A stretch of DNA of 41,119 nt from Paraphysomonas bandaiensis (lineage: Eukaryota; Protista; Chrysophyceae), in the NCBI GenBank assembly GCA_965644295.1, contig CBFFRP010000061.1:1-41119 (forward strand), read 5' to 3'. Shown here piece by piece: positions 1 through 41,119 of this stretch (the first letter of the stretch is position 1; each line of letters opens with the position of its first letter). The notes under the pieces are model-generated. The model made no database searches, was not told the origin of the DNA, and saw only the letters and a program-made list of their open reading frames with translations. Position numbers and translations under genes: made by a program.

Positions 1-284
1 AAATGTGAGTGCATACAATGCGATATCAATACAATGATGACATGCAGTGCAAGGCATAGTGTTGTGTACATGCAAGCATACATATAATAATATACACAAT
101 ATGTATCACAAGCAAGAGGTCTCACTCTTCCTAGCGTAGCCCAGATAAATGCAGCTTGCTCCCAACCATAGCTAGCAATCACATGCCCAGGAAGAACAGT
201 TAACGCCAAGGCGTTACACTACCATTTCTCACTCTCTCACACTTCCAAAGCAGACATACTATAGTTTTGCAGCCCCGCTGCACA
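1..284 (-). mobile_element. 5' (U3) end of an LTR related to element N, interrupting the copia-1 RT; continues beyond the left window edge
   Basis: 1-218 aligns by eye to ~37480-37693 (shared ATATAATAATATACACAATATGTATCAC, AGCAAGAGGTCTCA, CTTCCTAGCGTAGCCCA, GCGTTACA). 219-284 resembles 37694-37753 (purine tract plus TGTGCAGC-nnn-GCTGC). Copia RT homology stops at about 285. Confidence 0.8.
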
Positions 285-1928
285 ATGCCGTGCCCCTTTT
301 GCCACTAAATCCATTGCTTCCGCCGGTAGAGGACTCTTCCGTACCTTTCGCGGTGACCCAAGATACTTTTCAAACTTTTCTAAGATCTTAGCCGCATATA
401 CTGATTGGTCAAGACGAATATACTCTGGCGTTCTTGTGACTCGAACATTCAGAAAATGTTCCATCTCGCCCATATCCTTCATATCAAACCGGGCACACAG
501 TTGAGCTTTAATATCCTTCACTATGTTGACATCACGACCTAACACTAGGATATCATCCACATATATCGTTAATAATATCAATTCATCGCCCTTATACTGA
601 TAATACAAACACGGGTCTAATACACATGGTTTAAAATGCATAGATCGTATGAATTTATCCAATGTTTTCCACCACGACCGCGGGGAACTCCGAAGCCCGT
701 ATAACGACTTCTTCAGCTTAAAGCAGTACCCCTCAGGCAGCTGAAAGTCCGGAGTTGCCTTCATATATACGTCCCCCTCTATATCTGCATATAGAAATGC
801 GTTAGACACATCCAGTTGATGAATTACCATGTTCATCACGAAAGCTATGGCGATTAACAGTCGCACTGTTACCCCCTTAACAACGGGTGCGAAATGGTTC
901 GCCCAACCACTCGACTGCTGTCCACAACCGATTGCTACAAGACGAGCCTTATATCGGCGGACCTCTCCCTCCTTATCGTACTTCTTTCCATAGACGTACT
1001 TGGAGTGCAGTGGGACGACTCCGTCCGGTATACGAGTCACCTCCATGGTATCTCGCTTCGCCAAACCCTCTCGCTCTACACGGCGAGCTCGTCTCCACTC
1101 CCTGTGCTCGGCACTCTCCAAGGACTCACGATGTGTCTGAGGCACTGTCGACTCTTCCGCTGACATCCACACTGAGTCTGCCTCCTGTAAAAGGTCACTC
1201 ACATCACTCTCATCACTCAAATGATGGATTTGTCCTAACACCGACACATTCGTTACTGTCCTTGGAGTTCTTGCGCGTTTGCCGTGCGGATGATTCTCGG
1301 CAGGGGTCCCTTCCCCCGAAGGTAATGCTGAGTCAGCCTGGGGCTGCACCTGCCCACTTTCCGACTGCTGTGGCACCACTCCGCTGATACCGCCGTCACG
1401 GTTGTCAGTAACTCTGGCCCTAACCACCCTCTGCGCAAGATCCTCTGTCATCTTCTTGATGTCAGCAATATGAATAGGAGTTTTATCCTCCACTTGAACC
1501 TGGTTACCAGTAACCAACGACCGGTATCCCACAATAAGTCCCTTCCTTATCACCACTCTGTTAGTCTTGTATAGCAGACCACCATCCTCATGGTGCTTTC
1601 CGATAAGATACTCAAACTCACCCGGTTGACGAGCCTCGGGATCTATAGCCACTTGAGCCTCCTCCAGCTCTCTATAATAATCCTGAGACCTCTCAGGTAC
1701 CGATTCATCAAATAATACATGTACAGAGTGTACTACGGTGTCCCCCACTAGCACCTTGTATCCTTTTCGATCAGCTGGATACCCTATGAAATAACCTGTC
1801 ATTGCTTTGTCCTCCCAGTCCTTCCTCCTGTCGGCCTTGGGTGTTAGCACATATGCTTTGCACCCCCATTTCCGTAGCCACGATAGACTGGGAACGCTCC
1901 CCCCTGGGACACACTCATATGGAGACAT
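237..1928 (-). pseudogene. pol: copia-1 pol 3' part: integrase C-terminal SH3-like region, extra domain, and RVT_2-type reverse transcriptase truncated before RNase H
   Basis: WGCKAYV...GYFIGY, YKARLVAIG, QLDVSNAFLYAD, KLKKSLYGLRSSPRSW, IYVDDILV, FDMKDMGE. The last ~15 codons run into the inserted LTR. Confidence 0.93.
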
Positions 1929-1952
1929 CCATCCTTGCCACGTCCGAGTTGG

Positions 1953-3162
1953 TGTAAAGCCGTGGGCTTTTATAACACCCTTTTACACGTTTTATGACAA
2001 AATCATCATAATAATATTGATAACTATATTATTGCAATAACGATATGATAACATAATATGTAGGGTATATGTAGCTGGTTTTGTATGAGATTGACAACAA
2101 AAGACAGATTATTATTAGGAGAGCAAGACAGCAGAGGCTAATAGGATTTACCCTCACTACTAGGGTTTACCCTCGAACACACGTTTTCTTTGGTCTACGC
2201 GATAGCTACCCGTTGGTTTACGCCTATATCCATACGGTAGTCGGTGTCATAGCGTTTTGAGTTAGGAAGCATTGATTGGTACCGCATGTGCGATATTCGT
2301 AGTCCATTCATCATTATGAGAAGCTTTCTGATGGTTTTGAACAGCTCTATGTGCTTGCTCATCGTTCCGGACTATGATATACGATTATTTTCCCATTGCC
2401 ACTCTCCGTTGATTTTCTCCGGAATGGGGAGGAATTCGTAAGGTGCCATTGGACGTAGATGTAGAGGTGTCATGGGCATGTTAGTGATCTGAATATGAGT
2501 GTATTTGTATGGTCCAGTCTAAAGTACACACTCTTGCAAGGAAATGATATTTAACCGTTCGATTGTAAGCTTTTGAACCCGATTGCATTTTGTCGGTATT
2601 ATGCATGAGTTGGCGATTGTGTATTTCACGTTGTCATGAAATGTGCTTGCAATTTTTGTGGATTCGAATATTGTCATTTTGGGTGTTTGTGGCTCGAAAA
2701 TCGGCGATTTTCTGCAATTCTCAAAAAATTGGGGATTTTTGGGGTTTTGGGACTCAAAAATCGGAGGTTTTTGGAAAGGACCTATTTAGGCGTATTTCAG
2801 GGCGTTTTTGACTATAAACGATGTAGGATATGAATCGTATGTAGTGTAGTACATGTATGAGCATATTGTACGGTTGTGGTTGCATTCAATGTCCTGTGTA
2901 TGAGGAGGAGTCTTTAGACTAGGGGTCTGTCTTTTGTTTCGCTTGTAACTTAGTTTTAATAATAATTCTCTATGAAATTAACATAGTTGGTTGACTGATC
3001 TGTCTATTGGGAGCTTTAGATTGCAGGATACAGGGGAGCTTGTGTTTCTGGCTGTTGGTTTCTTAAAGAGTTATTATTATAGCATTCTGTTTTGTTGTTT
3101 CGATAAACAACCATTTCATATCTTTTCAGTGATCTTAGGTTGCAAGACCTGAGTTGTTCATA
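1953..3162 (+). repeat. Gypsy A 5' LTR (TGTAAAGCC...GTTCATA)
   Basis: Direct repeat of 8673-9883 with only a handful of substitutions and indels. Confidence 0.96.
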
Positions 3163-3173
3163 GTAAATTTACT
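3162..3173 (+). promoter_or_regulatory. Palindrome AGTAAATTTACT at the primer-binding-site position of gypsy A
   Basis: Overlaps the last base of the 5' LTR and is its own reverse complement. No TGG complementary to tRNA CCA follows the LTR. Confidence 0.85.
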
Positions 3174-3230
3174 CACGGTAAAACACGTAAGTGAAGATAT
3201 CATTATTGTAGATTATAGATATATATCGAA

Positions 3231-4700
3231 ATGTCTGATTCGGAGGGTCCTGTTGGTTCATCTGAGTTAGATGAAGTTAAGGAAATGTTACGGGGAATTG
3301 CTCTCAATTTGGAGAACGTCACTAAGTTGTGTGTAGCAACTGCCAGTAGGGTAGATAATCTGGAGTCCAGAATGTCTATTAATGAAGAAGTTTTAGTTAA
3401 TGAGCTGGAGGAAGCTCAGAAGGAAGTAGATGAGGCCATCCGTGACCAGCGTGAAGAGCAGCAGGGACATACCAGAGAGAGTGGCAGGGCTGCCGACGAC
3501 AAAGGCAAGAAGAAAGAGCGAAGGACATCTGTATTCATGAGGGAGGCTGAGTCTTCAGAGGGAATGGAGGTTCCAAAGCATGTCATCATCAATGTTGAAA
3601 AGCCATCCCATAAGCATATTTTTCTGGATTCGATGGAGCTTAGTGATTTTACAAAGTTTATCATCCAATGGTTTGAATATGAACAGATCAATGGGATTAA
3701 GCTTGAGCCAGCCCAGATAGTTAGCAGGCGTGTTCGGAACCTGCTTATGTTCAACAATAGCTTGACGGATAAAATGTTTGTTAAGTTGAGTGCTCAGAAA
3801 TTCTGTGAGCTGATGGCTAAGGAGACCAAGGTGTTGTCCAAAGTGGAGTTCATTGAGACTTTACGATACGCGCTGAGATATTTTAAGCCACTGGATTGGA
3901 AATCAGTGCGGCCGAATACACATGAGCTGTTTTTTCAAGAGATTTTGAAGCGAAAGAGTATTTTTATGCGTACGTTTACTATCATGATGGAGGCCAATAG
4001 TACTAAGTGTCCGCCGGTTGGAGGAAAAGAGTTTGGATCGGCTCAAGTATTTTTGGAGTTGATCGACGAGTCTTACAACAAACGAGTTCTGGCTGAGATT
4101 CCAAGGGTGACGGATACTAATTATGGTAATGTTGAAGAGTTTCTGGATACATACGTTTCCAAGGCGAGTGAGCATTATGAGGCGTCCAAGAACATCAGAT
4201 TGGTGCCTTATGAAGGGTCCGATTTCAGTAGGAAGCAAATTCAAAGGAGTTCGAGGAATCGGGACAATGGATACGTTGCAAAGGAGAAACCGAAATCTTT
4301 AAACAACGTGCAGTTTGCGGACCGAGTTGAGGATGATTTCTACAGTGATTTAGATGACAAGGAGGTTGACCCGATAGTTGTGGTCAAGGATGACGGGATG
4401 TCAGATGATGATTTCGAGAATGAGGTTGAGGAGATGTTGCTCGGCGAACCAGAGTCTGATAAGGAAGCTATAGAACAGGTGATGAACCTGGAGAAGACTG
4501 TTAATCCAACCCGTGGTTGCGTTGCGTATGCGTTGTATGGGAACTGCTACAAAGGGAAGGAATGTAAGCATGTCCAGGGTCATAATGGAGCAGTTGCAAC
4601 GGAAACCCGGAAATGGATGATGAAGAAGCTGTCTCAGATGATGGCAGATGATTCCAAAGGGCCGCGAAAGATTTTGCCGAGGCCTGGTGGAGTGACTTGA
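3231..4700 (+). CDS. gag: Gypsy A Gag-like protein (489 aa) with N-terminal coiled coil and C-terminal CCCH-type finger
   Basis: First ORF after the 5' LTR; CVAYALYGNCYKGKECKHVQGH; homologous to the family B ORF at 34277-36085. Confidence 0.88.
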   Translation: MSDSEGPVGSSELDEVKEMLRGIALNLENVTKLCVATASRVDNLESRMSINEEVLVNELEEAQKEVDEAIRDQREEQQGHTRESGRAADDKGKKKERRTSVFMREAESSEGMEVPKHVIINVEKPSHKHIFLDSMELSDFTKFIIQWFEYEQINGIKLEPAQIVSRRVRNLLMFNNSLTDKMFVKLSAQKFCELMAKETKVLSKVEFIETLRYALRYFKPLDWKSVRPNTHELFFQEILKRKSIFMRTFTIMMEANSTKCPPVGGKEFGSAQVFLELIDESYNKRVLAEIPRVTDTNYGNVEEFLDTYVSKASEHYEASKNIRLVPYEGSDFSRKQIQRSSRNRDNGYVAKEKPKSLNNVQFADRVEDDFYSDLDDKEVDPIVVVKDDGMSDDDFENEVEEMLLGEPESDKEAIEQVMNLEKTVNPTRGCVAYALYGNCYKGKECKHVQGHNGAVATETRKWMMKKLSQMMADDSKGPRKILPRPGGVT

Positions 4701-4703
4701 CAA

Positions 4704-7700
4704 ATGTGCGAGGCTAATGGTTCGCAGGATCACGAAGAAATATTGTACGGTTTGAATGATCCTGAGACTGTTAGTCGAGTTTTCCTCAGAAATTTGATGA
4801 ATGTCTGTAATACGCGAGAACGAAAAGACTTGACATTGGCTCATTCTGGGGGAAGCATTGTATGTGATGATAACTATATAATATCTGTGCGTGGAATATT
4901 GTTCGACACTGGAGCCCTAACATCTAACTTCATTTCCAAGGATTTGTTTGAGACGTTTAGAAATCATGTGTGTGAAAACAAAGTCATAAAAAAAGAAACA
5001 GTTATAGGATTTGCCGATAAAACGTCGAGAATGAAGTGTAGTTTTGTAGTGAAATTAAAATTGAGGTTTGAGAGAGAAGACTCCAAGGGAGAGTTCGTGT
5101 TATATGACGGGGATTTCATTGTTGCTGATATGGGTAGCAACGATATTATTATTGGACTTCCGGCTATCGTTAAGGATCTATGGGATTATTTTCTATTTAT
5201 GCTTAAAGGAAGGACTATTGAACGAATTGAATCAGAAGTAAGTTTTATTAAAAGGCGTGAGGACGATGTTACCGAGGATGATTTGTTGTTGAATGCGGTT
5301 GAAGAATTATTGCAGCCGTGGTGTGACAGTAGTAGGGAGGTAGCACCTGAAGAATTGGATGTTCCGGACCCTTCGCAGTTCGGATTTGCCTCAAGTTTTC
5401 TTGGAAAGACTAGAGAGGAAGCTTTGAGCGAGTTCGAGGATATGTTTGGTGAGCACGTGTCTCCAGAGTTCTCAGCAGCGCGACCGGTGCTGGAGTTATT
5501 GAGGACTAAGGGAGTAGAGGTATTTGTTCCAGAGCGGTGGGAAGGTATAAAAGGAGTGGATCCGTTGAACATCAAGTTCGCTGAGAATTTGCCTCCTAGG
5601 ATCAAGCCGAAGGCAAGACCCGTAAATCCTAGATTATATGAGGATGCGGAGAAGGAGTTTAGGAGACTGTGTGGTTACATCTATGTTCCTAGTAGGTCGC
5701 CATGGGCTTCTTGTTTGGTGATCGCGCCAAAAGCCACGAAACCTTTTATTAGGATTTGTGGGGATTACGTGCAAATCAACAAGTACATTCCAAGTCCACA
5801 CTATACAGTTCCTAATGTAAGACATGAGTTGGATCGTATTATTGGCTATAAGATATTTATGGACATTGACCTCACGAATGCGTTCCATCAGATCAGGTTG
5901 CATGAGAACACATCTGAAAAATTGTCAGTTCAAACACCGTGGGGCCAATTTCAGCCTTTATTCCTTCCGGAGGGAGTGTCTCCAGGGATTAGTGTGTTGC
6001 AAGAAGCGGTAGTCAAATTGTTTGGAGATCTGGAATGGGCGCTGTGTATATTTGATAATGTTCTGTTATTGGCACATGATTTTGATGATGCGTATAAGAA
6101 GCTGGAGATTTTCCTGGATAGATGCATTGAACATGGAGTTGTGTTGAAATTTGCAAAGACCTGGTTAGGATTTAGGGAGATCAAGTTTTTTGGCTATTTG
6201 GTAAGGCACAATAGTTTCGAGCTCACGGACGATAGGAAAGAGGCTTTATTGAAGATTCCTTTTCCAGAGAATGGAAATAGATGTAAGAAGATTAGATCTT
6301 TGTTGGGTCTGGGAGTATTCTTTGCTCCATTTGTTCAGAATTACTCAGATTTGGTTAAACATCTTACGGATATGACTAAGAGTAGTTTTAATTGGGAAGA
6401 AACGACATGGCAGCACGATTATAGGCAGGAGTTTGAAAACTATAAGAGTGGTTTGCAACAGTCTTGTGCTTTGTTTTATCCGAATTATGATCTTGAGTGG
6501 ACACTTAGGACAGATGCTAGTGACTATGGAGTGGCAGGCATTCTTTTCCAGACTGTTGAGGGAACTGGGTCTAGTCCGATTCAACAGCAAACTATTGCTA
6601 TCTGTTCCAAGAAATTGTCAGAGCAAGCCTTGAAGTGGTGTACTATTGAGAAGGAGGGTTTTGGTATATTCTATTCAGTCAAGAAATTTTCGTTTTATCT
6701 GAGAGGAAAGAAATTTACAATCGAGACGGACCACAACAACCTTGTGTGGATGGAGGCATCAGAAGTTGCGAAGATAATTCGATGGAGAATTTATTTGCAG
6801 GATTTTGACTTTTTGATTCGTCATATCCCAGGGAAGAACAATGTGGTTGCGGATTGCTTGTCAAGATTGCTGTATTTGTCCGGATTTGTGGACGAAAGTG
6901 ACGATTTCGACTCAGATGAAGTGAACTTCGTGACACTGCATAACATCTTTGAAAAAGACGATTTTGAGGACGACGTTCAAGAGATCGCGCCGCCTACGGA
7001 GGTACAGAGGATAGATTATTATCAGGCTATCAAAGAGGTTCACAACGCGCAAGCAGGACACTGGGGTGCGAAAGAGACGTGGAAACGTCTGTGTAGGCAA
7101 TTTCCGGGACACGGCGTGCCTTTCAAGGTGGTTGCAGACTTCGTGGACGAATGTATCAACTGTCAGAAGAATAGGCGAGAGCTGAAGCAGCGATTGATTC
7201 CTATTACTAGACATTTAAAACCGCCTCATTCCAGGAGTGCTTTGGGAATTGACGCGGTTGCTATTACACCTGTTTCTAAATCTGGTTACACGCATATTGT
7301 GGTCATGGTTAATTTGTTTACGAAATTGGTGTACCTATATGCGGTGAAAGGAATGACAGCTATCAATTTAGCTACAGCAGTGTGGAAGTGCTGGTGTACA
7401 TACGGGCTCACGGATATGATTATATCAGATATGGGTCCTGATCTCAAATCAGAACTTTTCGCAGAACTGGTTAAGTTGTCAGGACTTCGTCATGTTTTTA
7501 GTATTGCCAACAGGCACGTCAACGGATGTGAGCGTATTATTAAGGAAGTGGTTCGTCACATCCGGGCTATTTGTTTTGATAAGAGAATCGAAGCTGATGC
7601 TGTTTTAGAGGACGAACTGTTACTTGCTTCTATCATGTTCATTCTGAATACCCACGAGAGTAGTGAGACGGGGTATTCTGCATTCGAACTGACGTTTGGG

Positions 7701-8642
7701 TCCCAGGATTCCATTTATAAGAATCTTCTGGCCGCCCAGGGGAGAGACAATGATCCGTCTCATCAGCTGTTGAAAAGGCTGAACGATTACTTAGCTCTAG
7801 TTCGCCAGATATCAGCAGATTACCAGAAGTCTCTAGTTGAGAAACGAGCGGAAGCGGGTTTGGATCCTGCCAAACAAAACCAGTATTGTCCAGGCGATTT
7901 TGTTATGTTCGACGCTGGTGCTAAACCACATCCGAAATTATCCTCGAGGATGAAGGGTCCTTTCGAAGTGGTACGGCAATACAAGAATGATGTTCAAATT
8001 CGAAATCTTCTTACCGGGGGAATTCGGGAATACTCTGTCTCTGATCTTGAGCCATTTTTCGGAGATAAGGAATCGGCTATTGAGGCGGCGATGCGAGACC
8101 ATGAACAATTTAAGGTGGAGGAGATTCTTTCATATACGGGAGATTCACGAACCAAATCTACGATGGTCTTCAAGGTGAAGTATGCGGACGGCGATATCTT
8201 GGACATTCCATGGACACCGGATATTCAGTGTGAGGCATATTACGATTTTTGTGAGTCTAGGCCTTACTTGCGACACCTCGCGTACGACTCGTTTACGGCG
8301 AAGCGTTTTATCTCTTCAATGAGGAAGGAGAATATCACAACAGTTTCGGTTGGAGATACTGTCTATGTTGACCTCAGGTTCTATGGTGACCTGTGGTACG
8401 AGAGTCTTGGTTTACCGGATTATGCCACGGCCGCGTATGTCATGGAATTCACGTACACCCATTGGTATCACAAGAATTCCAAACGCAAGATTAGCGCCCG
8501 TTTTAATCTCAACGGTTCCAACTATGCCTTCGACAACTATTTGGTCTATTGTTGGGGGTCCCAGAAGGATTTTGACCCTGCTCGCATGATTTTGGTTGAT
8601 GCGTCGCTCGCTGCGGCTTATCCCAAAATTATTCAGGAGTAG
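4704..8642 (+). CDS. pol: Gypsy A Pol: protease, RT, RNase H, integrase, GPF motif, chromo-like domain, C-terminal extension
   Basis: LFDTGA; SPWAS, ICGDY, DIDLTNAFHQI, IFDN; TDASDYG, EKE, TDHNNL, NVVADCLSR; H-x5-H...CINC, GIDAV, ISDMG, NGCER; KGPF. In frame with gag across a TGA. Confidence 0.95.
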   Translation: MCEANGSQDHEEILYGLNDPETVSRVFLRNLMNVCNTRERKDLTLAHSGGSIVCDDNYIISVRGILFDTGALTSNFISKDLFETFRNHVCENKVIKKETVIGFADKTSRMKCSFVVKLKLRFEREDSKGEFVLYDGDFIVADMGSNDIIIGLPAIVKDLWDYFLFMLKGRTIERIESEVSFIKRREDDVTEDDLLLNAVEELLQPWCDSSREVAPEELDVPDPSQFGFASSFLGKTREEALSEFEDMFGEHVSPEFSAARPVLELLRTKGVEVFVPERWEGIKGVDPLNIKFAENLPPRIKPKARPVNPRLYEDAEKEFRRLCGYIYVPSRSPWASCLVIAPKATKPFIRICGDYVQINKYIPSPHYTVPNVRHELDRIIGYKIFMDIDLTNAFHQIRLHENTSEKLSVQTPWGQFQPLFLPEGVSPGISVLQEAVVKLFGDLEWALCIFDNVLLLAHDFDDAYKKLEIFLDRCIEHGVVLKFAKTWLGFREIKFFGYLVRHNSFELTDDRKEALLKIPFPENGNRCKKIRSLLGLGVFFAPFVQNYSDLVKHLTDMTKSSFNWEETTWQHDYRQEFENYKSGLQQSCALFYPNYDLEWTLRTDASDYGVAGILFQTVEGTGSSPIQQQTIAICSKKLSEQALKWCTIEKEGFGIFYSVKKFSFYLRGKKFTIETDHNNLVWMEASEVAKIIRWRIYLQDFDFLIRHIPGKNNVVADCLSRLLYLSGFVDESDDFDSDEVNFVTLHNIFEKDDFEDDVQEIAPPTEVQRIDYYQAIKEVHNAQAGHWGAKETWKRLCRQFPGHGVPFKVVADFVDECINCQKNRRELKQRLIPITRHLKPPHSRSALGIDAVAITPVSKSGYTHIVVMVNLFTKLVYLYAVKGMTAINLATAVWKCWCTYGLTDMIISDMGPDLKSELFAELVKLSGLRHVFSIANRHVNGCERIIKEVVRHIRAICFDKRIEADAVLEDELLLASIMFILNTHESSETGYSAFELTFGSQDSIYKNLLAAQGRDNDPSHQLLKRLNDYLALVRQISADYQKSLVEKRAEAGLDPAKQNQYCPGDFVMFDAGAKPHPKLSSRMKGPFEVVRQYKNDVQIRNLLTGGIREYSVSDLEPFFGDKESAIEAAMRDHEQFKVEEILSYTGDSRTKSTMVFKVKYADGDILDIPWTPDIQCEAYYDFCESRPYLRHLAYDSFTAKRFISSMRKENITTVSVGDTVYVDLRFYGDLWYESLGLPDYATAAYVMEFTYTHWYHKNSKRKISARFNLNGSNYAFDNYLVYCWGSQKDFDPARMILVDASLAAAYPKIIQE

Positions 8643-8653
8643 CTACGGCATCC

Positions 8654-8672
8654 GGGGGGGGAGAAAGGGTAA
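8654..8672 (+). promoter_or_regulatory. Polypurine tract of gypsy A
   Basis: G-run followed by AGAAAGGGTAA directly before the TG of the 3' LTR. Confidence 0.92.
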
Positions 8673-9883
8673 TGTAAAGCCGTGGGCTTTTATAACACCC
8701 TTTTACACGTTTTATGACATCATCATCATAATAATATTGATAACTATATTACTGCAATAACGATATGATAACATAATATGTAGGGTATATGTAGCTGGTT
8801 TTGTATGAGATTGACAACAAAAGACAGATTATTATTAGGAGAGCAAGACAGCAGAGGCTAATAGGATTTACCCTCACTACTAGGGTTTACCCTCGAACAC
8901 ACGTTTTCTTTGGTCTACGCGATAGCTACCCGTTGGTTTACGCCTATATCCATACGGTAGTCGGTGTCATAGCGTTTTGAGTTAGGAAGCATTGATTGGT
9001 ACCGCATGTGCGATATTCGTAGTCCATTCATCATTATGAGAAGCTTTCTGATGGTTTTGAACAGCTCTATGTGCTTGCTCATCGTTCCGGACTATGATAT
9101 GCGATTATTTCCTCCATTGCCATACACCGTTGATTTTCTCCGGAATGGGGAGGAATTCGTAAGGTGCCATTGGACGTAGATGTAGAGGTGTCATGGGCAT
9201 GTTAGTGATCTGAATATGAGTGTATTTGTATGGTCCAGTCTAAAGTACACACTCTTGCAAGGAAATGATATTTAACCGTTCGATTGTAAGCTTTTGAACC
9301 CGATTGCATTTTGTCGGTATTATGCATGAGTTGGCGATTGTGTATTTCACGTTGTCATGAAATGTGCTTGCAATTTTTGTGGATTCGAATATTGTCATTT
9401 TGGGTGTTTGTGGCTCGAAAATCGGCGATTTTCTGCAATTCTCAAAAATTGGGGATTTTTGGGGTTTTGGGACTCAAAAATCGGAGGTTTTTGGAAAGGA
9501 CCTATTTAGGCGTATTTCAGGGCGTTTTTGACTATAAACGATGTAGGATATGAATCGTATGTAGTGTAGTACATGTATGAGCATATTGTACGGTTGTGGT
9601 TGCATTCAATGTCCTGTGTATGAGGAGGAGTCTTTAGACTAGGGGTCTGTCTTTTGTTTCGCTTGTAACTTAGTTTTTAATAATAATTCTCTATGAAATT
9701 AACATAGTTGGTTGACTGATCTGTCTATTGGGAGCTTTAGATTGCAGGATACAGGGGAGCTTGTGTTTCTGGCTGTTGGTTTCTTAAAGAGTTATTATTA
9801 TAGCATTCTGTTTTGTTGTTTCGATAAACAACCATTTCATATCTTTTCAGTGATCTTAGGTTGCAAGACCTGAGTTGTTCATA
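8673..9883 (+). repeat. Gypsy A 3' LTR
   Basis: Direct repeat of 1953-3162, followed by the TTGG TSD and resumed copia sequence. Confidence 0.96.
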
Positions 9884-11489
9884 TTGGCATTCGTCGCACA
9901 ATGTAACATGCAGTTTGATAAGCATCAAACCAGAACGACTTTGGAAGTCCAGATGCCGTCAACATCGTCAGTGTCATCTCCCCAATTGTTCGGAATTTCC
10001 TCTCAGACACCGCGTTGAGCTCTGGCGTGTCTCGTGTTGTATGTGACACCCGAGTCCCATATCGCTGCAACAGATACTCTCTTATCTGCTGACTAATAAG
10101 TTCGGATCCTCCATCGGCATGATACTCCACTATACGGTTCCACCCCTCGTACTTCACTAAGTGGACCTCGCACAAGTGTCGTAGACATTTGAACACCTCC
10201 TCTCCGCTTCGAGTCCTCAATCCATATTCCCATATCATCTTTGTTGCTAAGTCCGTAAATAGGAGCACGTACTTATACCCTTGTCTGGATTCACAATTGA
10301 GGTAGACTGAGATGTCCGCTGTCACTCGTTCCAGAAACCTGACTGCGCTTAGCTCTTCGTTGTCCCGTGATTTGAACGAATGCCTGGTTATCTTCGCCTT
10401 GGCACACCATTTACACAGGGGTTTCTTGCAACTCTTCTCCTTTGCCTTCGAAAGGTGATGTCGTTGTAGTCCTGATCCTCTGAATAACATGTGTCGGTGA
10501 GCTTCTATTAACTTCGATTTCGAGACATGTCCAGTACGCTCATGTAAGCGATCCAACGCATCTTGTCCTGTATTATCCGACAAATTTACCTCCTCCATCT
10601 GATTGCACATAGACACATTTGGCAGATTTAACACCTCCATCAAGTCCACATACGGCATTCCTCCATGCTCATCGTACTCTCCAGTCAACACCTCGTTTCC
10701 AGAGTCCAATTCCACGATTTTAGGCTTTCGAAGCAGTTGTAATCCGTATCCCATTGATCTCAGCATTCCTCCTGACACAATGTTCTTCACCGCTTCTTCA
10801 CTAACTCTGATGTCTCTCCATTCCCCGAATGTACCAGCTCCCTGTGTCTCCAATTGAGAACCCTTTCTAGTTAGTTGGATTGCCCCAAACTCAGGAGTAA
10901 ATGACTCCAGTGCAATTTTATCCTTTACTATAAACAGTCTTTTACTTGCACAACTGTCCAGATATACACGAGGTTCTTCCGACGTATCCACCGATAGCAA
11001 AACCTCTTCTCCAAACATATTCGCTTCATCATCCGACGACTCTCCGTCGTTGACGTATTTCTTCCATTCTGTCTCGAATTTCCTGTTCGATTTTCGAGGA
11101 TTCTCATTATCCGGGTTTTTTATGTTCTTCCGTTTTTTCGACTTGCACTGTCGGGCTTTGTGACTAAAATCTCCACAGATATGACAACCAGTATAATCCT
11201 TTGATCCTGGCTGCTGCACACTCTTCGAAGCCTTTTCCTTTGTCTTCCCTTTTCTTTTGAACTTATCCATTTTTCTTTGTCGTTCCTTAGCATAACAATT
11301 CGCTGCTACATGTCCCTTCTTCCGACAAAATGAACAAACCACTGGCTCCTTCGACGCTGTAAAATTGATCTCTTCAGACTTGTCTCCCTTTAGTTTCTTC
11401 AGCTGCGTCATAGCCTCGTCATACTCTTCACAAGCCTCTTTCACCGAATCAAATGTAGTTGTTGCTTTAGGCATCATCGCTACCGACAT
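9879..11489 (-). pseudogene. gag-pol: copia-1 gag-pol 5' part: two CCHC knuckles, protease, GAG-pre-integrase, integrase core
   Basis: CSFCRKKGHVAANC, CHICGDFSHKARQC, YLDSCAS, LHERTGH...CKWC, TADIS...HADGG...NAVSERKF. The frame stays open upstream to about 11575, where homology ends. Confidence 0.93.
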
Positions 11490-29091: not shown

Positions 29092-30115
29092 TATGACGCA
29101 ACCCGGTTTGATAACCAGAATCACGGCTCGCAGTACAGGTATACCACACAAACACGCAAGTGTAAGAACAATGTATTATTAATGCTATGACTACTCTAAG
29201 CAATAACCTAATGCCCAGTTAGTGATTTCCGCCAGAAATCACCACGCAGGTAACACCGCCAGTGCAACAAGATCGTTGGCACCAAGCACTTCGGTTAAGC
29301 CTAAACAAGTGCATAACACCATAGCATACATGTTACACCCACTCCTACTCCTCAACAACATCACAACACCCTGCAACGTCATCACTACCCACAGAAACGT
29401 GTTTATTCTATAAACTGAATACACACAGCAACCTAGGAGTAACGTATAACCGCGTACTAATAGTACACTACATCCTACGTTTTACTTTCTACCTAAATAC
29501 CCATACAAAAACAGTATATCGCCACTTTGGTGTATTTTAGCATTCAAGAACCCAAAACCCCCAATATCCAGGTTATACGTAAATACAACCCTGCATACCA
29601 CGTATTGCATGTCACAATTGATTCCCCACTGAGTCTGGTATGAACACTCGTGCACCTCGAGTATATAATATCCATTCTCCGTTGATGTGATATGTACTTG
29701 CCCCCCTATAGGGTAGTATGGGTAATGCCAGTAAGTATTCCTATGGAAGTATACACTGCAACTGCTACACTGGAATACTGACCCACATAACTTTATTATA
29801 AATTTGTGGCAGGTTTCACATTGCGTGAAGTCACCATCAGCAGATCATAGTGTACATCCTCATCAGCAGATAAAAAGTGGACATCACACCTGAACGTTGA
29901 TTCCGTGTGTAAGTACATCACAGCTCATTACCCCATCCATCATCTTAATGAGTATAACATAGAATATGCATCCTAGACATGGTATAGGGTCCTGATAATA
30001 TAATGTTCTTGATATAGGGTCCTAAACTAATATCACAGGGTCCTGAATGGGCAATGCATGCAGTTCTGGTACTATAGCCACGTAGATAGGGCATAGGAAA
30101 TGCCACGTGGTCACA
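29092..30115 (-). repeat. Gypsy B 3' LTR (start either 30115 or 29927)
   Basis: The U5 end ...GCGTCATA is fixed by the repeat. Two PPT|TG candidates: AAGGGGGGGAGGCAG|TGTGA (30115) and GATGGGGTAA|TGAGC (29927). The partner LTR is cut by the window edge. Confidence 0.75.
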
Positions 30116-30418: not shown

Positions 30419-33400
30419 TCAACACATTTTTAGTTGAGAGTATCCGTTTGGAACTTTATGATACCAATGTGTGAAGACAAAACGTGCCACATAAGTAATC
30501 AAATGAGAATCCGGTAACTCCAGGCTTTCATACCACAGGTCCCCGAAAACTCTTAAGTCTACATAAGCCTCATCACCTGGCTGAAAACTAGTGATAGGCT
30601 GTTTACGGATTTTTGCAATATATTCCTTTGCCTCTTTAACCGGATAAATAAGATGATATAAATATCTTTTCCTAGAACAGAAATCGGCATATGGAATAGA
30701 GTCAAAAATATCCTTACTGAATGGAATGTCACGAACATCACCATCCTGAAACTTCACAGTAAAAACTAGAGAGGTTCTGGTGTCTCTATCACCTCTGTAG
30801 TATAGAATCGTGTCAATCACATGCTGTTCATGGTCTCTGCAAGCCATGTTATACGCTGTGTCGTGATCGCCCGCAAAAAGTTTAACCTCACGCACATCGA
30901 CTTTCACAACTTGTCCTGTCACCAAATGTCTGCAATCAATGTCATTTTTATATTGAGATATGACTTTGAAAGGACCCATATAACGGTGAGACATCTTAGG
31001 ATGGACTTTAGCACCCTTGTCGAACAAAACAAGATCTCCCGGCTGATATCTGTTCTGCTTGTCGACCGGTATACCTTGGCTAGCCCGCTCTTGCACAAGA
31101 CGCTGTTGATAAGCATGCGAAGCTGCCCTGAGCTCACGAAGGTTATCATTAAAACGTTTAAGTCGTGCATGCGCATCCTGGGAAACAGAGTCAGTGTCCA
31201 CGTTAAAATAACGCTTGTCCTCCGATCCAAAAGTTAACTCAAATGGTGAGAATCCCGTCTCAGATGACACCTCAGAGTTAAGAATGTGTTGGACACTGGC
31301 GATCCAGCTAGGATCTTCAAAAACATCCTTGCGCTCTTGACGCTCGCTAGCATCATATACTAGAGCTCGTAGGTGACGTACTACCTCACCTATGATACGT
31401 TCTGAGCCATTCGCATGCCGGTTGGCTATACTGAACGTATGGCGCATTCCCATGTATTCCGTTAGCTGTTGGAATAGATCCGAAGTTAAATCCGGACCCT
31501 GGTCCGAAATCACGACGTCCGTGTGACCGTAATAGGACCAATACTTCCACACAGTATTCGCTAAATTCAAAGCCGTTACTCCTTTTACTGGTTCCAGAAA
31601 AACGAGCTTTGTGTGAAGGTTCACTATCACATTGATATGAGTGTAACCGTCCTTGCCATGTGGAGTAATCTCCACTGCATCAATTCCAATAGCACTGCGA
31701 GCCCCCGGTGGTTTTAGGTTGCGCACTATGGGAATAAGTGCTTCCTTCATGGCTAACCGGGTTTTCACGCAAGTTGGACAGTTGGATATATATTCTGCTA
31801 CTACCTGATATGGTATTCCATGCCCTGGAAAACGTTTATTGAGACGAATCCAAGTAGCTTTCCCTCCAAGATGACCTACGCGAGAGTTGTGTACCTCACG
31901 CAAGCATTCCTCACGAGATATATTCATGGAAGGTTGTTCTTGGTCACCGAGATCCGACGGGTCCATAAAATTTCCTAGGAATGAGAAATACTCAGAATCC
32001 TGACAGTCCTCTCCCAGAAAATAGGCATCATCCCACATAGAATCATCCAAGAACATGCCCGACAGATAAGCCAGTTGGTGTTCCCTGGATAACCAGTCTG
32101 CCAACCAATTCTGTGCTCCAGAAATATGTCGGATTTTAAAATTGAATGATTGCAAGAATATTCTCCATCTAACAATTTTTGGTACCTCAGACGCTTCCAT
32201 CCAGAGCAAATTGTTATGGTCAGTCTCTATAGTAAACTGTTTTCCAACTAAATAGTACGCTAATTGTTTAACCGAATAGTAGATACCATAGCCCTCCTGC
32301 TCTATAGTAGCCCATTTCATTGCTTGCTCTGAAAACTTTTTAGATATAAAGGCAATAGGTTGCAATTGAGCTTCTCCTGTTGGTAATATCTTCCGTTGAA
32401 GTAGTACCGAACCTATACCAAGCTCACTTGCATCCGTCCGTAAAATCCACTCTAACTCATAATCAGGGTAGAAGAGCTCACAAGCATCTTGTAAACCTTT
32501 TATGAAACGTTTGTACTCAGCTTCATAATCATGACGCCAAGTAGATTTATTCCAATTGAAAGATTTCTTAGTGAGGTCCGTTAAATGACCTACTAAGTCA
32601 GAATACTTTGGCGTGAAGCTGGAAAAGAAAACTCCCTTGCCTAGCAGAGATCTAGCTTGTTTAGTCGATGATGGCATGGGTATGTTTGCCAACGCTTCCT
32701 TTTTATCCGGACACACTTCATACGATTTGTGTTTGCATACATATCCGAAAAAATTAACTTTCTTAAAACCAAGCCAGCTCTTAGCCATTTTCAACTTGAT
32801 GTTTCTCTCCAGACATCTGTCAATAACTCGTTCCAACTTTTCATAAGCATCCTGGGGATCGTTGGCTAGTATTAGCATATTATCAAAGATAACGATAGCC
32901 CAGTCTGAAAAATCGGCAAATATCTCCCGAACCACCTCTTGCAGAACACCAGTAGCAGGCGCTATACCCTCTGGCATGAAATTAGGTGCAAACTGTCCCC
33001 ATGGCGTTTGAATGGACAATTTCTCGGAAGTTTCCTCATCTAAAGGTATTTGATGAAACGCATTTGTAAGATCTATATCCAAATAATATGGAAAATTAAT
33101 GATCTTGTCAAGTTCATGTTTGACATTGGGAATAGTGTAGTTTCCCACATGCATATGATCATTGATCTTAACGTAATCCCCACAAAATCGAATGTAAGGA
33201 GGTGTGGCCTTGGGCGCTACTACAAGACAAGAAGCCCATGGCGACCTACTCTTCCGGTAAAAATACCCACACAGACGACGAAATTCTTTCTCTGAGGCTT
33301 CCCATAGCTTCGGATTAATAGGCCTCGCCTTGGGTTTGATCCGATCCGGAAGTGTATCTTTCCACTTAATTTTTAAAGGTTCAACACCTTTTACACCAGA

Positions 33401-34261
33401 CCACTCATCTGGTACAAAGACTTTAACCGCTTTAGTTCGTAGGAGATGCATCACATTTGTTTGTTCCTTCATCTCACTACTAACATGGGTCTCCAACAAC
33501 TGCTCATAGTCTTTTAAAGCTTCCGCTCTAGTCTTTCCTAAGAATACCAAAGCTTCTTTAAATTGAACCGGCAATTCGGAATCCTCTTCCTCCGGTGCAA
33601 TTTGAGTACTCGCTTTAGACCATGGTTCCACTATTTGTCCATGCTCTAAACCAGACAAATCATCATGAGTCGAAATCTTCTTGGTATCACTTTCTATCTC
33701 ATAAGATGTTTGTTCAAAAGCATGCCTCATCAATTCACACATAAAGGGATACAAAGTACCAGTAAGTGCCGGCAATCCAAGTATGACATCATTATGTTTC
33801 ATGTCAATAATTAGGAAATCCCCTTTGAACTGATACTGTTTTCCATAAGGGTCAGCCAACAAAAGATTGAGTCTGACTCCTTGTGTGACTGTTTTTATAG
33901 TAGTACTATCCGCCAATACTACTCTATGATTCGCATCGTATAAAAATTCGGGGTTTAGCTCTGGCATTAAACTCTCAACCAGACCCCTAGACACATAGTT
34001 GGCTGAAAGCGCTCCCGTATCGCAAAGTACGGTGATCAATTTTTCCGAATTCTCTCTCAAATTATTGTTCATTATTAGCCTAGCTACAGTATGTGCTGAT
34101 GTCATTCTTCGCGTATTAGGAAAGCAAGCATACAGCTTAGCTTGCCCCTCGGTTTGCACAGAACACAATGCCGCCGTGAATGTAGACTCTTCAAATTGTA
34201 AGCAACAATCGTCATCCCCGTCACACCCATTAACTACACTGACATCCTGCGCTCCCCGCAC
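30419..34261 (-). CDS. pol: Gypsy B Pol (PR-RT-RH-IN-chromo-like-extension); a 1-nt frameshift near 30455 moves the homologous tail (stop at 30288) into another frame
   Basis: LCDTGA, DIDLTNAFHQI, IFDN, TDASELG, TDHNNL, ADWLSR, GIDAV, ISDQG, NGSER, MGPF. The other frame continues SKRILSTKNVLTKQTFRLDNYHIHCF...MVLVDEDFASKFPQV, matching the A tail. Confidence 0.94.
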   Translation of the reverse strand: MRGAQDVSVVNGCDGDDDCCLQFEESTFTAALCSVQTEGQAKLYACFPNTRRMTSAHTVARLIMNNNLRENSEKLITVLCDTGALSANYVSRGLVESLMPELNPEFLYDANHRVVLADSTTIKTVTQGVRLNLLLADPYGKQYQFKGDFLIIDMKHNDVILGLPALTGTLYPFMCELMRHAFEQTSYEIESDTKKISTHDDLSGLEHGQIVEPWSKASTQIAPEEEDSELPVQFKEALVFLGKTRAEALKDYEQLLETHVSSEMKEQTNVMHLLRTKAVKVFVPDEWSGVKGVEPLKIKWKDTLPDRIKPKARPINPKLWEASEKEFRRLCGYFYRKSRSPWASCLVVAPKATPPYIRFCGDYVKINDHMHVGNYTIPNVKHELDKIINFPYYLDIDLTNAFHQIPLDEETSEKLSIQTPWGQFAPNFMPEGIAPATGVLQEVVREIFADFSDWAIVIFDNMLILANDPQDAYEKLERVIDRCLERNIKLKMAKSWLGFKKVNFFGYVCKHKSYEVCPDKKEALANIPMPSSTKQARSLLGKGVFFSSFTPKYSDLVGHLTDLTKKSFNWNKSTWRHDYEAEYKRFIKGLQDACELFYPDYELEWILRTDASELGIGSVLLQRKILPTGEAQLQPIAFISKKFSEQAMKWATIEQEGYGIYYSVKQLAYYLVGKQFTIETDHNNLLWMEASEVPKIVRWRIFLQSFNFKIRHISGAQNWLADWLSREHQLAYLSGMFLDDSMWDDAYFLGEDCQDSEYFSFLGNFMDPSDLGDQEQPSMNISREECLREVHNSRVGHLGGKATWIRLNKRFPGHGIPYQVVAEYISNCPTCVKTRLAMKEALIPIVRNLKPPGARSAIGIDAVEITPHGKDGYTHINVIVNLHTKLVFLEPVKGVTALNLANTVWKYWSYYGHTDVVISDQGPDLTSDLFQQLTEYMGMRHTFSIANRHANGSERIIGEVVRHLRALVYDASERQERKDVFEDPSWIASVQHILNSEVSSETGFSPFELTFGSEDKRYFNVDTDSVSQDAHARLKRFNDNLRELRAASHAYQQRLVQERASQGIPVDKQNRYQPGDLVLFDKGAKVHPKMSHRYMGPFKVISQYKNDIDCRHLVTGQVVKVDVREVKLFAGDHDTAYNMACRDHEQHVIDTILYYRGDRDTRTSLVFTVKFQDGDVRDIPFSKDIFDSIPYADFCSRKRYLYHLIYPVKEAKEYIAKIRKQPITSFQPGDEAYVDLRVFGDLWYESLELPDSHLITYVARFVFTHWYHKVPNGYSQLKMC

Positions 34262-37693: not shown

Positions 37694-38083
37694 CTACCTT
37701 TTCCACCTCTCTTACGTAACCGCTGAAGAACAATTTGGCAGCACGGCTGCACATTACCCTCTCTCATCTCTCTCTCTCATAGTTGTTATCAAGCAATATG
37801 AACAGTCCATAGAACTCCCACACAAAAATCCCTAATGACAAGTCAAGCAAAATCATGCCCTGATGAATCTTCTAGTAGAAAATGCTCCATGATACCATAT
37901 GCTCCCGATCTCCTCTTCATAATATCTGTTAAAAATCTCTAGCTACTCAAACTCAGTAGGTGATGCACGCGCTGCAATGTAGGGGATTCCGGGGTATGAG
38001 AGTCATTGCTCCATGCACACCAAAAATCAGAGCCAGTCCGCCTAAGTCGCATCTAGAGGCTCTGTAACAGCCCAAATTGTGAA

Positions 38084-38704: not shown

Positions 38705-38792
38705 GTGACGGGGACTATTGTCTTAACTTGACGTAGATATATCCTTCCAATAATGTTATCAAAATCTGCAGATTTCAAAGCTGCTTTTCGCC

Positions 38793-38804
38793 AGTAAATT
38801 TACT
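38793..38804 (-). promoter_or_regulatory. Palindrome AGTAAATTTACT at the PBS position of element N
   Basis: Identical to the gypsy A motif and in the same register relative to the LTR end. Confidence 0.85.
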
Positions 38805-40335
38805 ATAGCTAACCCGAGGTATAACACCGGGTGCAGCTTATAAACGTGAATATATGTATGTAGATATAACAATAGAAGAAAGTAATTGAGAAGATCAATG
38901 ACGTTATTATGCCTTACAAACAGCCCAGGCACCCCCAAGCTCTTATAATTAGACACCTCTAACTACGTGTTAAGGTGTAAGGCACTATAACATAAATCTG
39001 AACAGCAAGCAGAGCACAAAATAACTCATAAAGAACCACTCATGTTCTACAAGCTATCTAGAAGCACACAATAACATCTAGAACAATATTCTACAAAAGA
39101 TTGTACAAGATTTGGTTGATTATGTGGACATATCAGTTTTCTGGAACACTCCCGTAGAATGCTATGAAGACCAACTCCAACCAACAGAGTCTCCAGCACA
39201 CCAAAATGAGAATATTGTCCAATCATATGCTTGTACTCAACAATATACCGTCACTGTACTATAGACCATATACAGATATACAACAGCACAATACTGTATA
39301 CTCAGAATCATATACAGCATCATACAATCGTATATACAGAGGAGTACAAGGTCTCATACATCCCGCATACCAGAGTAGCATCCAGGAGTATACAGCAAAT
39401 ACAGCAAATACAGCATACGACAAAAACAACAGTTGAGAAGAGACTGAAGATGATGATGCTCTTAACGCTCATTGCAGATACATGCCAACGCTCCATAACC
39501 AGTAAGAGATAGACGATGACACTTGGCACCCTAGTCAAGTCCATAATGACAGACGTCCGACGCAAGTCACGGCTCCAAACATCATGAACACGAGAAGTTA
39601 GAGTCCGCTGCGCTCCACAGGAATATGAAGACCACACAGAGAGTACCAATGGCCTCATGACAAGATGAATGGACCCTCAGGTGATACAATGTGTACATAT
39701 ACCATACATACGTCATATTCATGTCATGTATACATGCAGATCGTGCTTATGACAAGACTTGGATCTTATACAAGCACGAGCACTATATGCCATACAGTAT
39801 GCAAGTGATAAGAGTGTGATGATGGATATAGATGGTAATACACATACATATAGAGATAGAAGAAGGTATGGATGAATGTGAATGCACTATATTGATATCT
39901 AATTCCCTCTATCTGCAGCTAGAGAAGAATTAATACCAACACAGCATAGAGATATAAGTGTGAAGTGTAGTTAGTATGTATGCAATGATATATATGATGT
40001 ATAATGTATGTCATATATGTGTGGTGTGAGTGATGTATGGTGAATGCAATATGGATATAATACGCTATGTATGAGGTGTGAGTGTGTGGTATAGGTGATA
40101 CATGCATAACACTACTTCAATACAAATGCAATGATAATAATAAGCAGTGCAATCACATAGTGTAGTGTACATACAAGCATAGATATAATAATATACACAA
40201 TATGTATCACCAGCAAGAGGTCTCAATCTTCCTAGCGTAGCCCATATAAGTATCCAACCATAGCCATAGCACTCACCAGTAGATAGACATCCAAATCTCA
40301 CTCACAGGAGTATAGTTGAACGCCACAGCGTTACA
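38804..40335 (-). repeat. Element N 5' LTR
   Basis: Repeat of 36163-37693. Confidence 0.94.
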
Positions 40336-40609
40336 CCCTTGGCTTCAGAGACTAACACAGATCGACAAGGAGGGAATTTAAAATTCGCTCACAGGTCTCA
40401 ATGAAATAACTCAAATCCAGTCCCAAGTCCCCCGGAAGAAACTGACAAATCCACAGACCTGCGTAAGTATCCACCAAGACACCAAGACACCACTCAACAC
40501 ACTGACACAAGACACCCCTGCACAACGCACACAAGCAAGGCACACAGACAGGTCTATCTAAATGATGTGTATCAAGAATTACTCACAAGAATTCTTGTGC
40601 GAGCAAATA

Positions 40610-40623
40610 AGTAAATATTTACT
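40610..40623 (-). promoter_or_regulatory. Palindrome AGTAAATATTTACT at the PBS position of gypsy B
   Basis: 14-nt perfect palindrome overlapping the last base of the 5' LTR. Confidence 0.85.
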
Positions 40624-41119
40624 ATGACGCAACCCGGTTTGATAACCAGAATCACGGCTCGCAGTACAGGTATACCACACAAACACGCAAGTGTAAGAAC
40701 AATGTATTATTAATGCTATGACTACTCTAAGCAATAACCTAATGCCCAGTTAGTGATTTCCGCCAGAAATCACCACGCAGGTAACACCGCCAGTGCAACA
40801 AGATCGTTGGCACCAAGCACTTCGGTTAAGCCTAAACAAGTGCATAACACCATAGCATACATGTTACACCCACTCCTACTCCTCAACAACATCACAACAC
40901 CCTGCAACGTCATCACTACCCACAGAAACGTGTTTATTCTATAAACTGAATACACACAGCAACCTAGGAGTAACGTATAACCGCGTACTAATAGTACACT
41001 ACATCCTACGTTTTACTTTCTACCTAAATACCCATACAAAAACAGTATATCGCCACTTTGGTGTATTTTAGCATTCAAGAACCCAAAACCCCCAATATCC
41101 AGGTTATACGTAAATACAA
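40623..41119 (-). repeat. Gypsy B 5' LTR (U5-side 497 bp; remainder beyond the window)
   Basis: Matches 29092-29588. Confidence 0.93.

Follow-up and report, generated by a model that had tools for sequence, protein, structure and literature searches.

A perfect palindrome at the primer-site position of a Ty3/gypsy-type retrotransposon clade: a candidate for priming by paired element RNAs

In the genome of Paraphysomonas bandaiensis (Chrysophyceae), three LTR retrotransposons, referred to here as Gypsy A, Gypsy B and element N, carry a perfect palindrome directly behind the 5′ LTR. They are located in a stretch of 41,119 nucleotides that was analysed at its full length and is hereafter called the window (NCBI GenBank assembly GCA_965644295.1, contig CBFFRP010000061.1, positions 1 to 41,119 of the forward strand). 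We established directly where the site lies, that it is ubiquitous in the clade to which these elements belong, that its symmetry is maintained despite sequence turnover, that no other partner was present among those searched, and how the RNA around it is structured. We propose that the palindrome is the primer-binding site (PBS) of a Ty3/gypsy-type clade that does not use a host tRNA, and that two element RNAs pair through it, one of them being cut to prime; to this reading we assign an even chance of being correct. The limits of the LTRs in the window were determined by repeat alignment and from target-site duplications (TSDs), and the features are as follows.

1953..3162, plus strand: 5′ LTR of Gypsy A, TGT...ATA, 1210 nt (repeat alignment, TSD TTGG)
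3134..3153, plus strand: U5 hairpin of Gypsy A, 8-bp stem with G-U pairs and a GCAA loop, just 5′ of the palindrome
3162..3173, plus strand: 12-nt palindrome AGTAAATTTACT of Gypsy A, whose first A is the final base of the 5′ LTR
3231..8642, plus strand: gag and pol of Gypsy A together
3231-4700, plus strand: gag of Gypsy A, CCCH-type finger
4704-8642, plus strand: pol of Gypsy A, PR-RT-RNaseH-IN, RT motif IFDN
8654-8672, plus strand: polypurine tract of Gypsy A, directly before the 3′ LTR
8673..9883, plus strand: 3′ LTR of Gypsy A (repeat alignment, TSD TTGG)
29092..30115, minus strand: 3′ LTR of Gypsy B
30419-34261, minus strand: pol of Gypsy B
34277-36085, minus strand: gag of Gypsy B
36163-37693, minus strand: 3′ LTR of element N (repeat alignment, TSD AGGG)
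37694-38803, minus strand: internal part of element N, a single 206-aa open reading frame (ORF), without pol
38762-38775, minus strand: equivalent in element N of the second leader palindrome, AAATCTGCAGATTT
38777..38839, minus strand: primer-site domain of element N, a stem AAGCTGC/GCAGCTT around the U5 hairpin (38812-38833) and the palindrome
38793..38804, minus strand: 12-nt palindrome AGTAAATTTACT of the non-autonomous element N
38804..40335, minus strand: 5′ LTR of element N (repeat alignment, TSD AGGG)
40584..40599, minus strand: second leader palindrome or hairpin of Gypsy B, CACAAGAATTCTTGTG, more GC-rich
40598..40664, minus strand: primer-site domain of Gypsy B, a U5-leader stem TGCGAGC/GCTCGCA around the U5 hairpin (40628-40655) and the palindrome
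40610..40623, minus strand: 14-nt palindrome AGTAAATATTTACT of Gypsy B
40623 to the window end, minus strand: 5′ LTR of Gypsy B

The LTRs of all three elements read TGT...ATA, and the last A of each LTR is the first base of its palindrome. The 4-bp TSDs, the LTR pairs and the PR-RT-RNaseH-IN order are those of Ty3/gypsy elements, and the Pfam domains RVT_1, RT_RNaseH, Integrase_H2C2 and rve were found in that order in both Gypsy A and Gypsy B. An earlier reading made from the letters of the window (the sequence-only reading) had described the three LTRs as unalignable by eye. This was overstated, since they share TGTRA..GTGG starts, the U5 hairpin and ATA/ACA ends, and the pol proteins of Gypsy A and Gypsy B are 49% identical. 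The U5 hairpin stem of Gypsy A showed paired changes across relatives. Element N is inserted inside the Gypsy B leader (nested; element N occupies 36163-40335), and its 206-aa ORF faintly resembles the N-terminus of the Gypsy B gag. The same reading had noted that this pol-less element keeps the site, which is indeed the case, with the 206-aa ORF as its only one and pol absent; retention under these circumstances suggests that the site is required in cis. Gypsy A is itself inserted in a Ty1/copia element (window 1-11489), whose minus-strand pol is thereby divided into two parts, 237-1928 and 9879-11489. In the Gypsy A leader, ACGTAAGTG at 3185-3193 resembles a consensus 5′ splice donor and is shared by the leaders of A-like families and by L082, the relative with 70% identity; this sequence conservation suggests that a spliced subgenomic RNA may be made.

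All three palindromes were confirmed at the positions where the sequence-only reading had placed them. Shuffling of the window predicted 0.18 matches to the 12-mer (with at most one mismatch) and 0 matches to the 14-mer, compared with two and one observed, respectively. We searched the 62.5-Mb genome assembly, using the reversed pattern as a control. ATAGTAAATTTACT gave 47 strand matches genome-wide versus 2 for the control, the 12-mer after a non-A base gave 59 per strand versus 4-5, and the 14-mer was present at 39 loci versus 1. The 14-mer lay directly behind an LTR end in 38 of the 38 loci that were fetched, and the 12-mer did so in all of its fetched loci except 5. These 5 loci without an obvious LTR junction equal the control level in number, and examination of the non-LTR 12-mer loci for tRNA and Rfam genes detected none. 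In total, the 12-mer was found in at least 10 LTR families and the 14-mer in 4, and the bases behind the LTR were GTAAAT... in all families. One single-copy non-LTR locus, L198 (G000 C115:78384-78396), contains the 12-mer as the core of a 22-nt perfect palindrome (AATCT...AGATT); no tRNA was found at this locus, and Rfam gave one sub-threshold miRNA-like match only.

Copies were also retrieved by their flanks alone, and thus without selection on the palindrome. The palindrome was intact in every flank-retrieved copy of family A (19/19) and of family B2 (23/23). These copies varied just outside it, with T or C at the second-to-last LTR base and C, A, T or an indel directly after the site. The 14-mer was unchanged through four diverged families within this one genome, which argues against a host primer that rewrites the site in each cycle.

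The search for a pairing partner covered 29 distinct tRNAs, a partial set derived from 63 scored candidates (the best tRNA loci of the genome). A complementary host tRNA had been named by the sequence-only reading as evidence that would speak against tRNA-independent priming, and none of the 29 distinct tRNAs recovered in this partial set had 8 nt or more of complementarity (0/29). With respect to the same partial set, no TGG-type or tRNA-like PBS was present behind the LTR in the fetched families. An internal (half-tRNA) match was likewise absent among the 29 distinct tRNAs, the nuclear set being incomplete and intron-split genes being able to escape. A tRNA-Met type PBS, sought as a control in the copia element of the window, yielded nothing usable. 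We also considered the tRNA-Tyr anticodon arm, in which GUA and AA followed by a UUUAC stem would give GUAAAUUUAC, and found no support for it: the organellar tRNA-Tyr matches GTAAAT only, and the genomic TGTAAATTTAC sites are mostly one unrelated repeat and not tRNA. Contig C669 of G000, which is AT-rich, carries dense tRNA gene clusters and is probably an organelle genome, has GTAAAT in the anticodon loop of its tRNA-Tyr with no further match to the palindrome.

A host RNA primer, either a tRNA fragment or another small RNA, could nevertheless bind a site that is palindromic by coincidence. Half-tRNA priming is known in copia lineages, the same 12-mer is common to many families and to hosts of different samples, as is typical of tRNA sites, and the 12-mer at one non-LTR locus lies inside a 22-nt palindrome. 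However, we regard this explanation as very improbable in view of the more than 20 palindromes found in relatives and the stability of both the 12-mer and the 14-mer in one genome. In addition, no tRNA match was found among the 29 distinct tRNAs of the partial set, the tRNA-Tyr anticodon arm was not supported, every fetched 14-mer locus is an LTR junction, and the non-LTR 12-mer loci contain neither a tRNA nor an Rfam gene.

Partners within the element were sought in the LTR and in the leader. Neither the site nor its flank had a complement of at least 7 nt in the LTRs of Gypsy A and element N, and the complements in the Gypsy B LTR comprised the U5-leader stem and two chance 7-mers only. In the upstream LTR region of 21 relatives, the longest complement averaged 6.9 nt versus 7.3 nt in shuffles. 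As no LTR complement rose above the shuffles, the Tf1 arrangement is excluded, and the complementary transcript 5′ end, which the sequence-only reading had listed beside the tRNA as possible counterevidence, did not appear either in the LTRs of Gypsy A and element N or in the 21 relatives. Downstream of the site (60 nt, 38 distinct loci), the longest complement was 5.08 nt versus 5.09 nt after shuffling, and the leaders gave no match to Rfam families or ribozymes. Among the candidates searched, the sole complement of the site is the site itself.

Assemblies from ENA, JGI, Logan and NCBI contain pol homologues in abundance, with identities ranging from 32 to 70%. GTAAATTTAC was located directly behind the LTR in contigs with 70%, 52%, 45% and 42% pol identity, and in two relatives (L083 and L084) the TSDs put the LTR end at ...CATA, with the palindrome running from the terminal A as in Gypsy A and element N. 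A metagenome scan provided 80 loci of 32-53% identity, 21 of which contain GTAAATTTAC or the 14-mer core; most of the remaining loci have another AT-rich palindrome, which is likewise perfect and precedes the start of gag by 3-130 nt. A perfect palindrome of at least 12 nt was present within 200 nt upstream of gag in 42 of the 52 testable loci. The same criterion was satisfied by 7.6% of background windows from the same loci and by 4.4 of 52 in first-order Markov simulations (binomial p ~6e-38, for loci that are not independent and gag starts that are ORF predictions). Most of the exceptions among the 52 have the 12-mer farther upstream. Given the non-independence of the loci and the predicted gag starts, the robust figure is the number of distinct palindromes. 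More than 20 different perfect palindromes, AT-rich and differing from one another by symmetric changes, occupy the site among the relatives; examples are CAATATTAATATTG, AGTATTAATACT, AGTATCGATACT, AGAAATATTTCT, AGAAACGTTTCT and CAATAACGTTATTG, as well as CAATAATATTATTG, TAATAAATTTATTA, AATATTAATATT, ACAATTATAATTGT and AACAATAATTATTGTT. The conservation of the palindrome across the clade, which the sequence-only reading had proposed to examine genome-wide, was thereby borne out, symmetry being kept in the 42 loci of relatives as in the 19 family A and 23 family B2 copies.

The arrangement of these variants in the pol tree indicates how they changed. AGTAAATTTACT is scattered through a large subtree with the variants nested within it. 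AGTATTAATACT, a sister of AGTAAATTTACT lineages, is separated from them by four changes that form two symmetric pairs, AGTATCGATACT adjoins the AGTATTAATACT/AGTAAATTTACT lineages, and CAATAACGTTATTG and AGAAACGTTTCT are sister to a AGTAAATTTACT lineage. Since the variants are nested among AGTAAATTTACT lineages, the changes in the palindrome were symmetric. The 14-mer has two origins, one in the lineage of the window's Gypsy B and the other in L106/L107. Because just one event, in which the AT at the centre is duplicated, can produce it, it is alone weak evidence for symmetry, and the distant variants carry the argument. The proposal of the sequence-only reading that symmetry itself is conserved therefore holds on the strength of the more than 20 symmetric variants in relatives, but the central TA of the B variant, on which it had been based, counts for little. 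Active relatives with an asymmetric site had been named as a further counterexample; an asymmetric site at the U5 boundary was sought among the relatives and none was found, the more than 20 sequences all being perfect palindromes. One apparently asymmetric case, GTAAATTTATTTAC in L160, was rejected, as it sits within the pol coding region and not at the PBS position.

One sequence, AGTAAATTTACT, is strongly conserved across pol proteins that are only about 40% identical. Judged from the sequences, this conservation exceeds the needs of pairing and hints at sequence-specific recognition, or possibly at a conserved trans factor. The palindrome could also be a DNA-level site for a dimeric protein, whether a host factor or an element protein, and be unrelated to priming, given that palindromic DNA is typical for dimeric DNA-binding proteins. 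We give this explanation very little credence and consider it extremely improbable: a protein-binding site seldom imposes a constraint on each of its central bases, the sequences vary among lineages in one host, and the position is exactly that of the expected PBS, with no alternative PBS.

LTR pairs in the clade are 99-100% identical. The clade is large, expressed and recently active, and is spread through marine and freshwater microbial eukaryotes. A marine plankton metatranscriptome contig runs unbroken from U5 (2966, in the LTR) via the site into gag and beyond 4952. The assembled contigs showed no start, end or strand-switch joint at the site, and they indicate only that marine plankton RNA libraries contain the element, whether as a transcript or merely as sequence. 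In three relatives (L081:5662-6522, L083:9386-10165 and L084:9047-10036), an ORF of 259-329 aa in antisense orientation occupies the interval from the pol end to the following gag, apparently inside the LTR; the ORF of L084 matches a SET (methyltransferase) domain.

Folding calculations bear on how the site might pair. Folded alone, the palindromes gave 0 to -2.7 kcal/mol, whereas their homodimers gave -7 to -17 kcal/mol. The central 2-4 bases are self-complementary in every variant (TTAA, ATAT, ACGT, TCGA, AATT), and the loops of the genuine hairpins in the vicinity, such as GCAA and ATCA, are ordinary and not palindromic. The near-unstable monomers and the invariably self-complementary centre favour a full duplex of two RNAs over a hairpin. 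The sequence-only reading had allowed for both pairing of two genomic RNAs and folding back of one; the first of these is favoured by the homodimer energies (-7 to -17 kcal/mol) and the second is disfavoured. In the minimum-energy fold of Gypsy B and element N, the palindrome is placed in a three-way junction that is closed by the U5-leader stem and adjoined by the U5 hairpin. When nine copies drawn from four 14-mer families were aligned, the U5-leader stem, the U5 hairpin and a further leader hairpin were supported, with 9 of 27 pairs kept despite changes on both sides. The layout of this junction is that of retroviral and Tf1 primer-site domains.

The folds also bear on an intramolecular alternative, in which the palindrome would form a hairpin on one RNA and either allow snap-back priming after a cut at its 3′ edge or serve as a signal for a primer-independent or protein-primed start by the FDN RT. 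A palindrome hairpin of 4-5 bp is predicted within the three-way junction for Gypsy B and element N, the active-site box of RT is altered throughout the clade, and the corresponding site of the fungal GalEa elements was read as a hairpin (PMC5445492). We nevertheless consider this alternative unlikely. The monomer hairpins are near-unstable (0 to -2.7 kcal/mol), and the would-be loop, that is, the central 2-4 bases, is self-complementary in all of the more than 20 variants, unlike the non-palindromic GCAA and ATCA loops of the genuine neighbouring hairpins. Moreover, a downstream partner is absent.

A second palindrome or hairpin, richer in GC, lies 10-20 nt downstream of the primer site in Gypsy B and element N and has covarying equivalents in other families; it is a candidate for a separate dimerisation or packaging signal. 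Its presence bears in two ways on the possibility that the palindrome at the U5 boundary serves dimerisation or packaging only, like the retroviral dimerisation initiation site (DIS) or PBS-linked palindromes, and that priming relies on a different molecule. In retroviruses and Ty1, genome dimerisation is driven by palindromes, and these elements possess a second leader palindrome, but the same downstream palindrome would make a purely dimerising role of the first one redundant. Furthermore, a primer must anneal at the U5 boundary, where nothing else is conserved: the bases directly after the palindrome vary even inside one family, and behind the LTR of the fetched families there is no TGG-type or, judged by the partial tRNA set, tRNA-like site. 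A role in dimerisation or packaging alone appears quite unlikely to us.

Under the preferred reading of priming by paired element RNAs, two genomic RNAs would pair via the palindrome and form an AU-rich duplex of 12-18 bp. One strand would be cut at the 3′ edge of the duplex, by the element's own RNase H if Tf1 is an analogy, and the resulting 3′-OH would be carried by a terminal U that pairs with the final A of U5 in the partner RNA. Extension of this end by RT into U5 and R would produce minus-strand strong-stop DNA. In HIV-1, the terminal ribonucleotide of the tRNA primer is retained at primer removal. If it were kept here as well, the finished LTR would end exactly with that A. The U5-terminal A (or CA) forms the beginning of the palindromes, and such retention would explain why they always start at the last LTR base. 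RNase H normally does not cut RNA-RNA duplexes, Tf1 being the sole precedent, and a template RNA that was cut would lose its own primer site, so that the model works only if cutting is asymmetric or a second template stays uncut. We infer the dimer, the cut, the cutting enzyme, the priming and the need for an uncut template.

An inverted structure was observed at L001:496-648 (G000 C120) and, in identical form, at L002 (C265). It consists of the U5 end, the palindrome, about 25 nt and a 13-nt centre, followed by the mirror image with a second palindrome and the inverted U5 end; the arms are 70 nt long and 83% complementary. The structure could be a by-product of snap-back or of primer read-through. 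The 16-nt form ATAGTAAATTTACTAT was considered as a mark of such inverted U5-palindrome-U5 junctions and rejected, as in L004 it is merely the longer palindrome of an N-like copy, and L003, another candidate junction, proved to be two facing elements.

Two protein features accompany the site. The RT catalytic box is xFDN (IFDN, LFDN, once AYDN) and not YxDD, both in the window (6048-6059) and in all 50 relatives (L082-L178), and the loss of the box tyrosine may be linked to the unusual primer. The Gag finger of Gypsy A (4518-4583) has the form C-x8-C-x5-C...H, which is of the CCCH type and not a CCHC knuckle. If dimer priming is correct, genome dimerisation and initiation would be one event, the elements could be independent of the host tRNA supply, the retention of the site in non-autonomous elements would be explained, and the odd FDN box would gain a functional context. 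These elements will be overlooked or wrongly scored by LTR annotation tools that demand a tRNA PBS.

Several known systems resemble this clade in part. The half-tRNA copia types (copia, Osser, Bianca) also have a non-TGG site directly behind the LTR, but in their case it corresponds to an internal part of tRNA-Met or tRNA-Ile and lacks palindromic symmetry. HIV-1 DIS, MMTV/MPMV pal and Ty1 PAL are short perfect palindromes of the 5′ leader able to pair two genomic RNAs. In those systems, however, the tRNA PBS is separate and the palindrome is usually placed in a hairpin loop, whereas the palindrome of the Gypsy clade abuts U5 and occupies the PBS position. The Tf1/sushi group (the clade of Tf1, Tf2, Maggy and Tcn1) is similar in being tRNA-independent, with the element's own RNA as the proposed primer, in the length of the duplex (11 bp in Tf1), and in having a U5 hairpin beside the site, which was found in Gypsy A, Gypsy B and element N with compensatory changes in the B families. 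By analogy, the 3′-OH would again come from a cut by the element's RNase H at the edge of the duplex. In contrast, the partner of the PBS in Tf1 is formed by the 11 nt at the start of its own transcript, a complement that the LTRs of the Gypsy clade lack, and Tf1 sites are not palindromic, whereas the only partner found for the Gypsy clade site is another copy of itself.

The closest counterpart is found in the fungal GalEa copia elements, which lack a tRNA PBS (Donnart et al. 2017, PMC5445492). Their "Conserved Hairpin Site" is a sequence of 9 bp that follows the 5′ LTR, becomes a palindrome when the terminal LTR A is counted in (ACTGATCAGT, ACTAATTAGT) and whose variants change at symmetric positions; GalEa LTRs start with TGT, QTDD replaces YVDD in RT, and the gag finger is CCCH (PMC5445492). 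According to the authors, GalEa priming fits no known model (PMC5445492). The idea of a palindrome at the PBS position thus has a published precedent. In our survey of the literature, the coverage of which was incomplete, no description of a palindromic primer site in Gypsy, diatom or protist elements was found. The Gypsy clade agrees with GalEa in lacking a tRNA-type PBS, in having a palindrome directly after the 5′ LTR that includes the final LTR A, in the TGT starts of the LTRs, in the CCCH-type gag finger and in an altered RT box (QTDD in GalEa, FDN in the Gypsy clade). It differs in its Ty3/gypsy layout, with RVT_1, RT_RNaseH and IN after RT, whereas GalEa belongs to Ty1/copia. Its palindromes are AT-rich and 12-18 nt long, compared with 10 nt in GalEa. 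The CHSeq2 partner, which lies 12-41 nt downstream with a conserved A/A mismatch and defines the GalEa site, is absent from the Gypsy clade, and the hosts are aquatic protists and metagenomes, as opposed to Pezizomycotina. Membership in the GalEa family was rejected because of the other superfamily, the longer palindromes and the missing CHSeq2 partner. Minus-strand priming has so far been shown experimentally for host tRNA (whole or half) and for Tf1-type fold-back of the transcript 5′ end. If dimer priming is true of the Gypsy clade, the fungal GalEa site, unexplained since 2017, probably works alike. It is conceivable, with a likelihood that we place a little short of even, that the two groups represent a third priming mode, in which two RNAs pair via a palindrome located where U5 ends and one of them undergoes a cut, dimerisation being coupled with initiation, and that this mode, accompanied by an FDN RT and a CCCH finger, arose at least twice, in the Gypsy clade and in the fungal GalEa copia elements.
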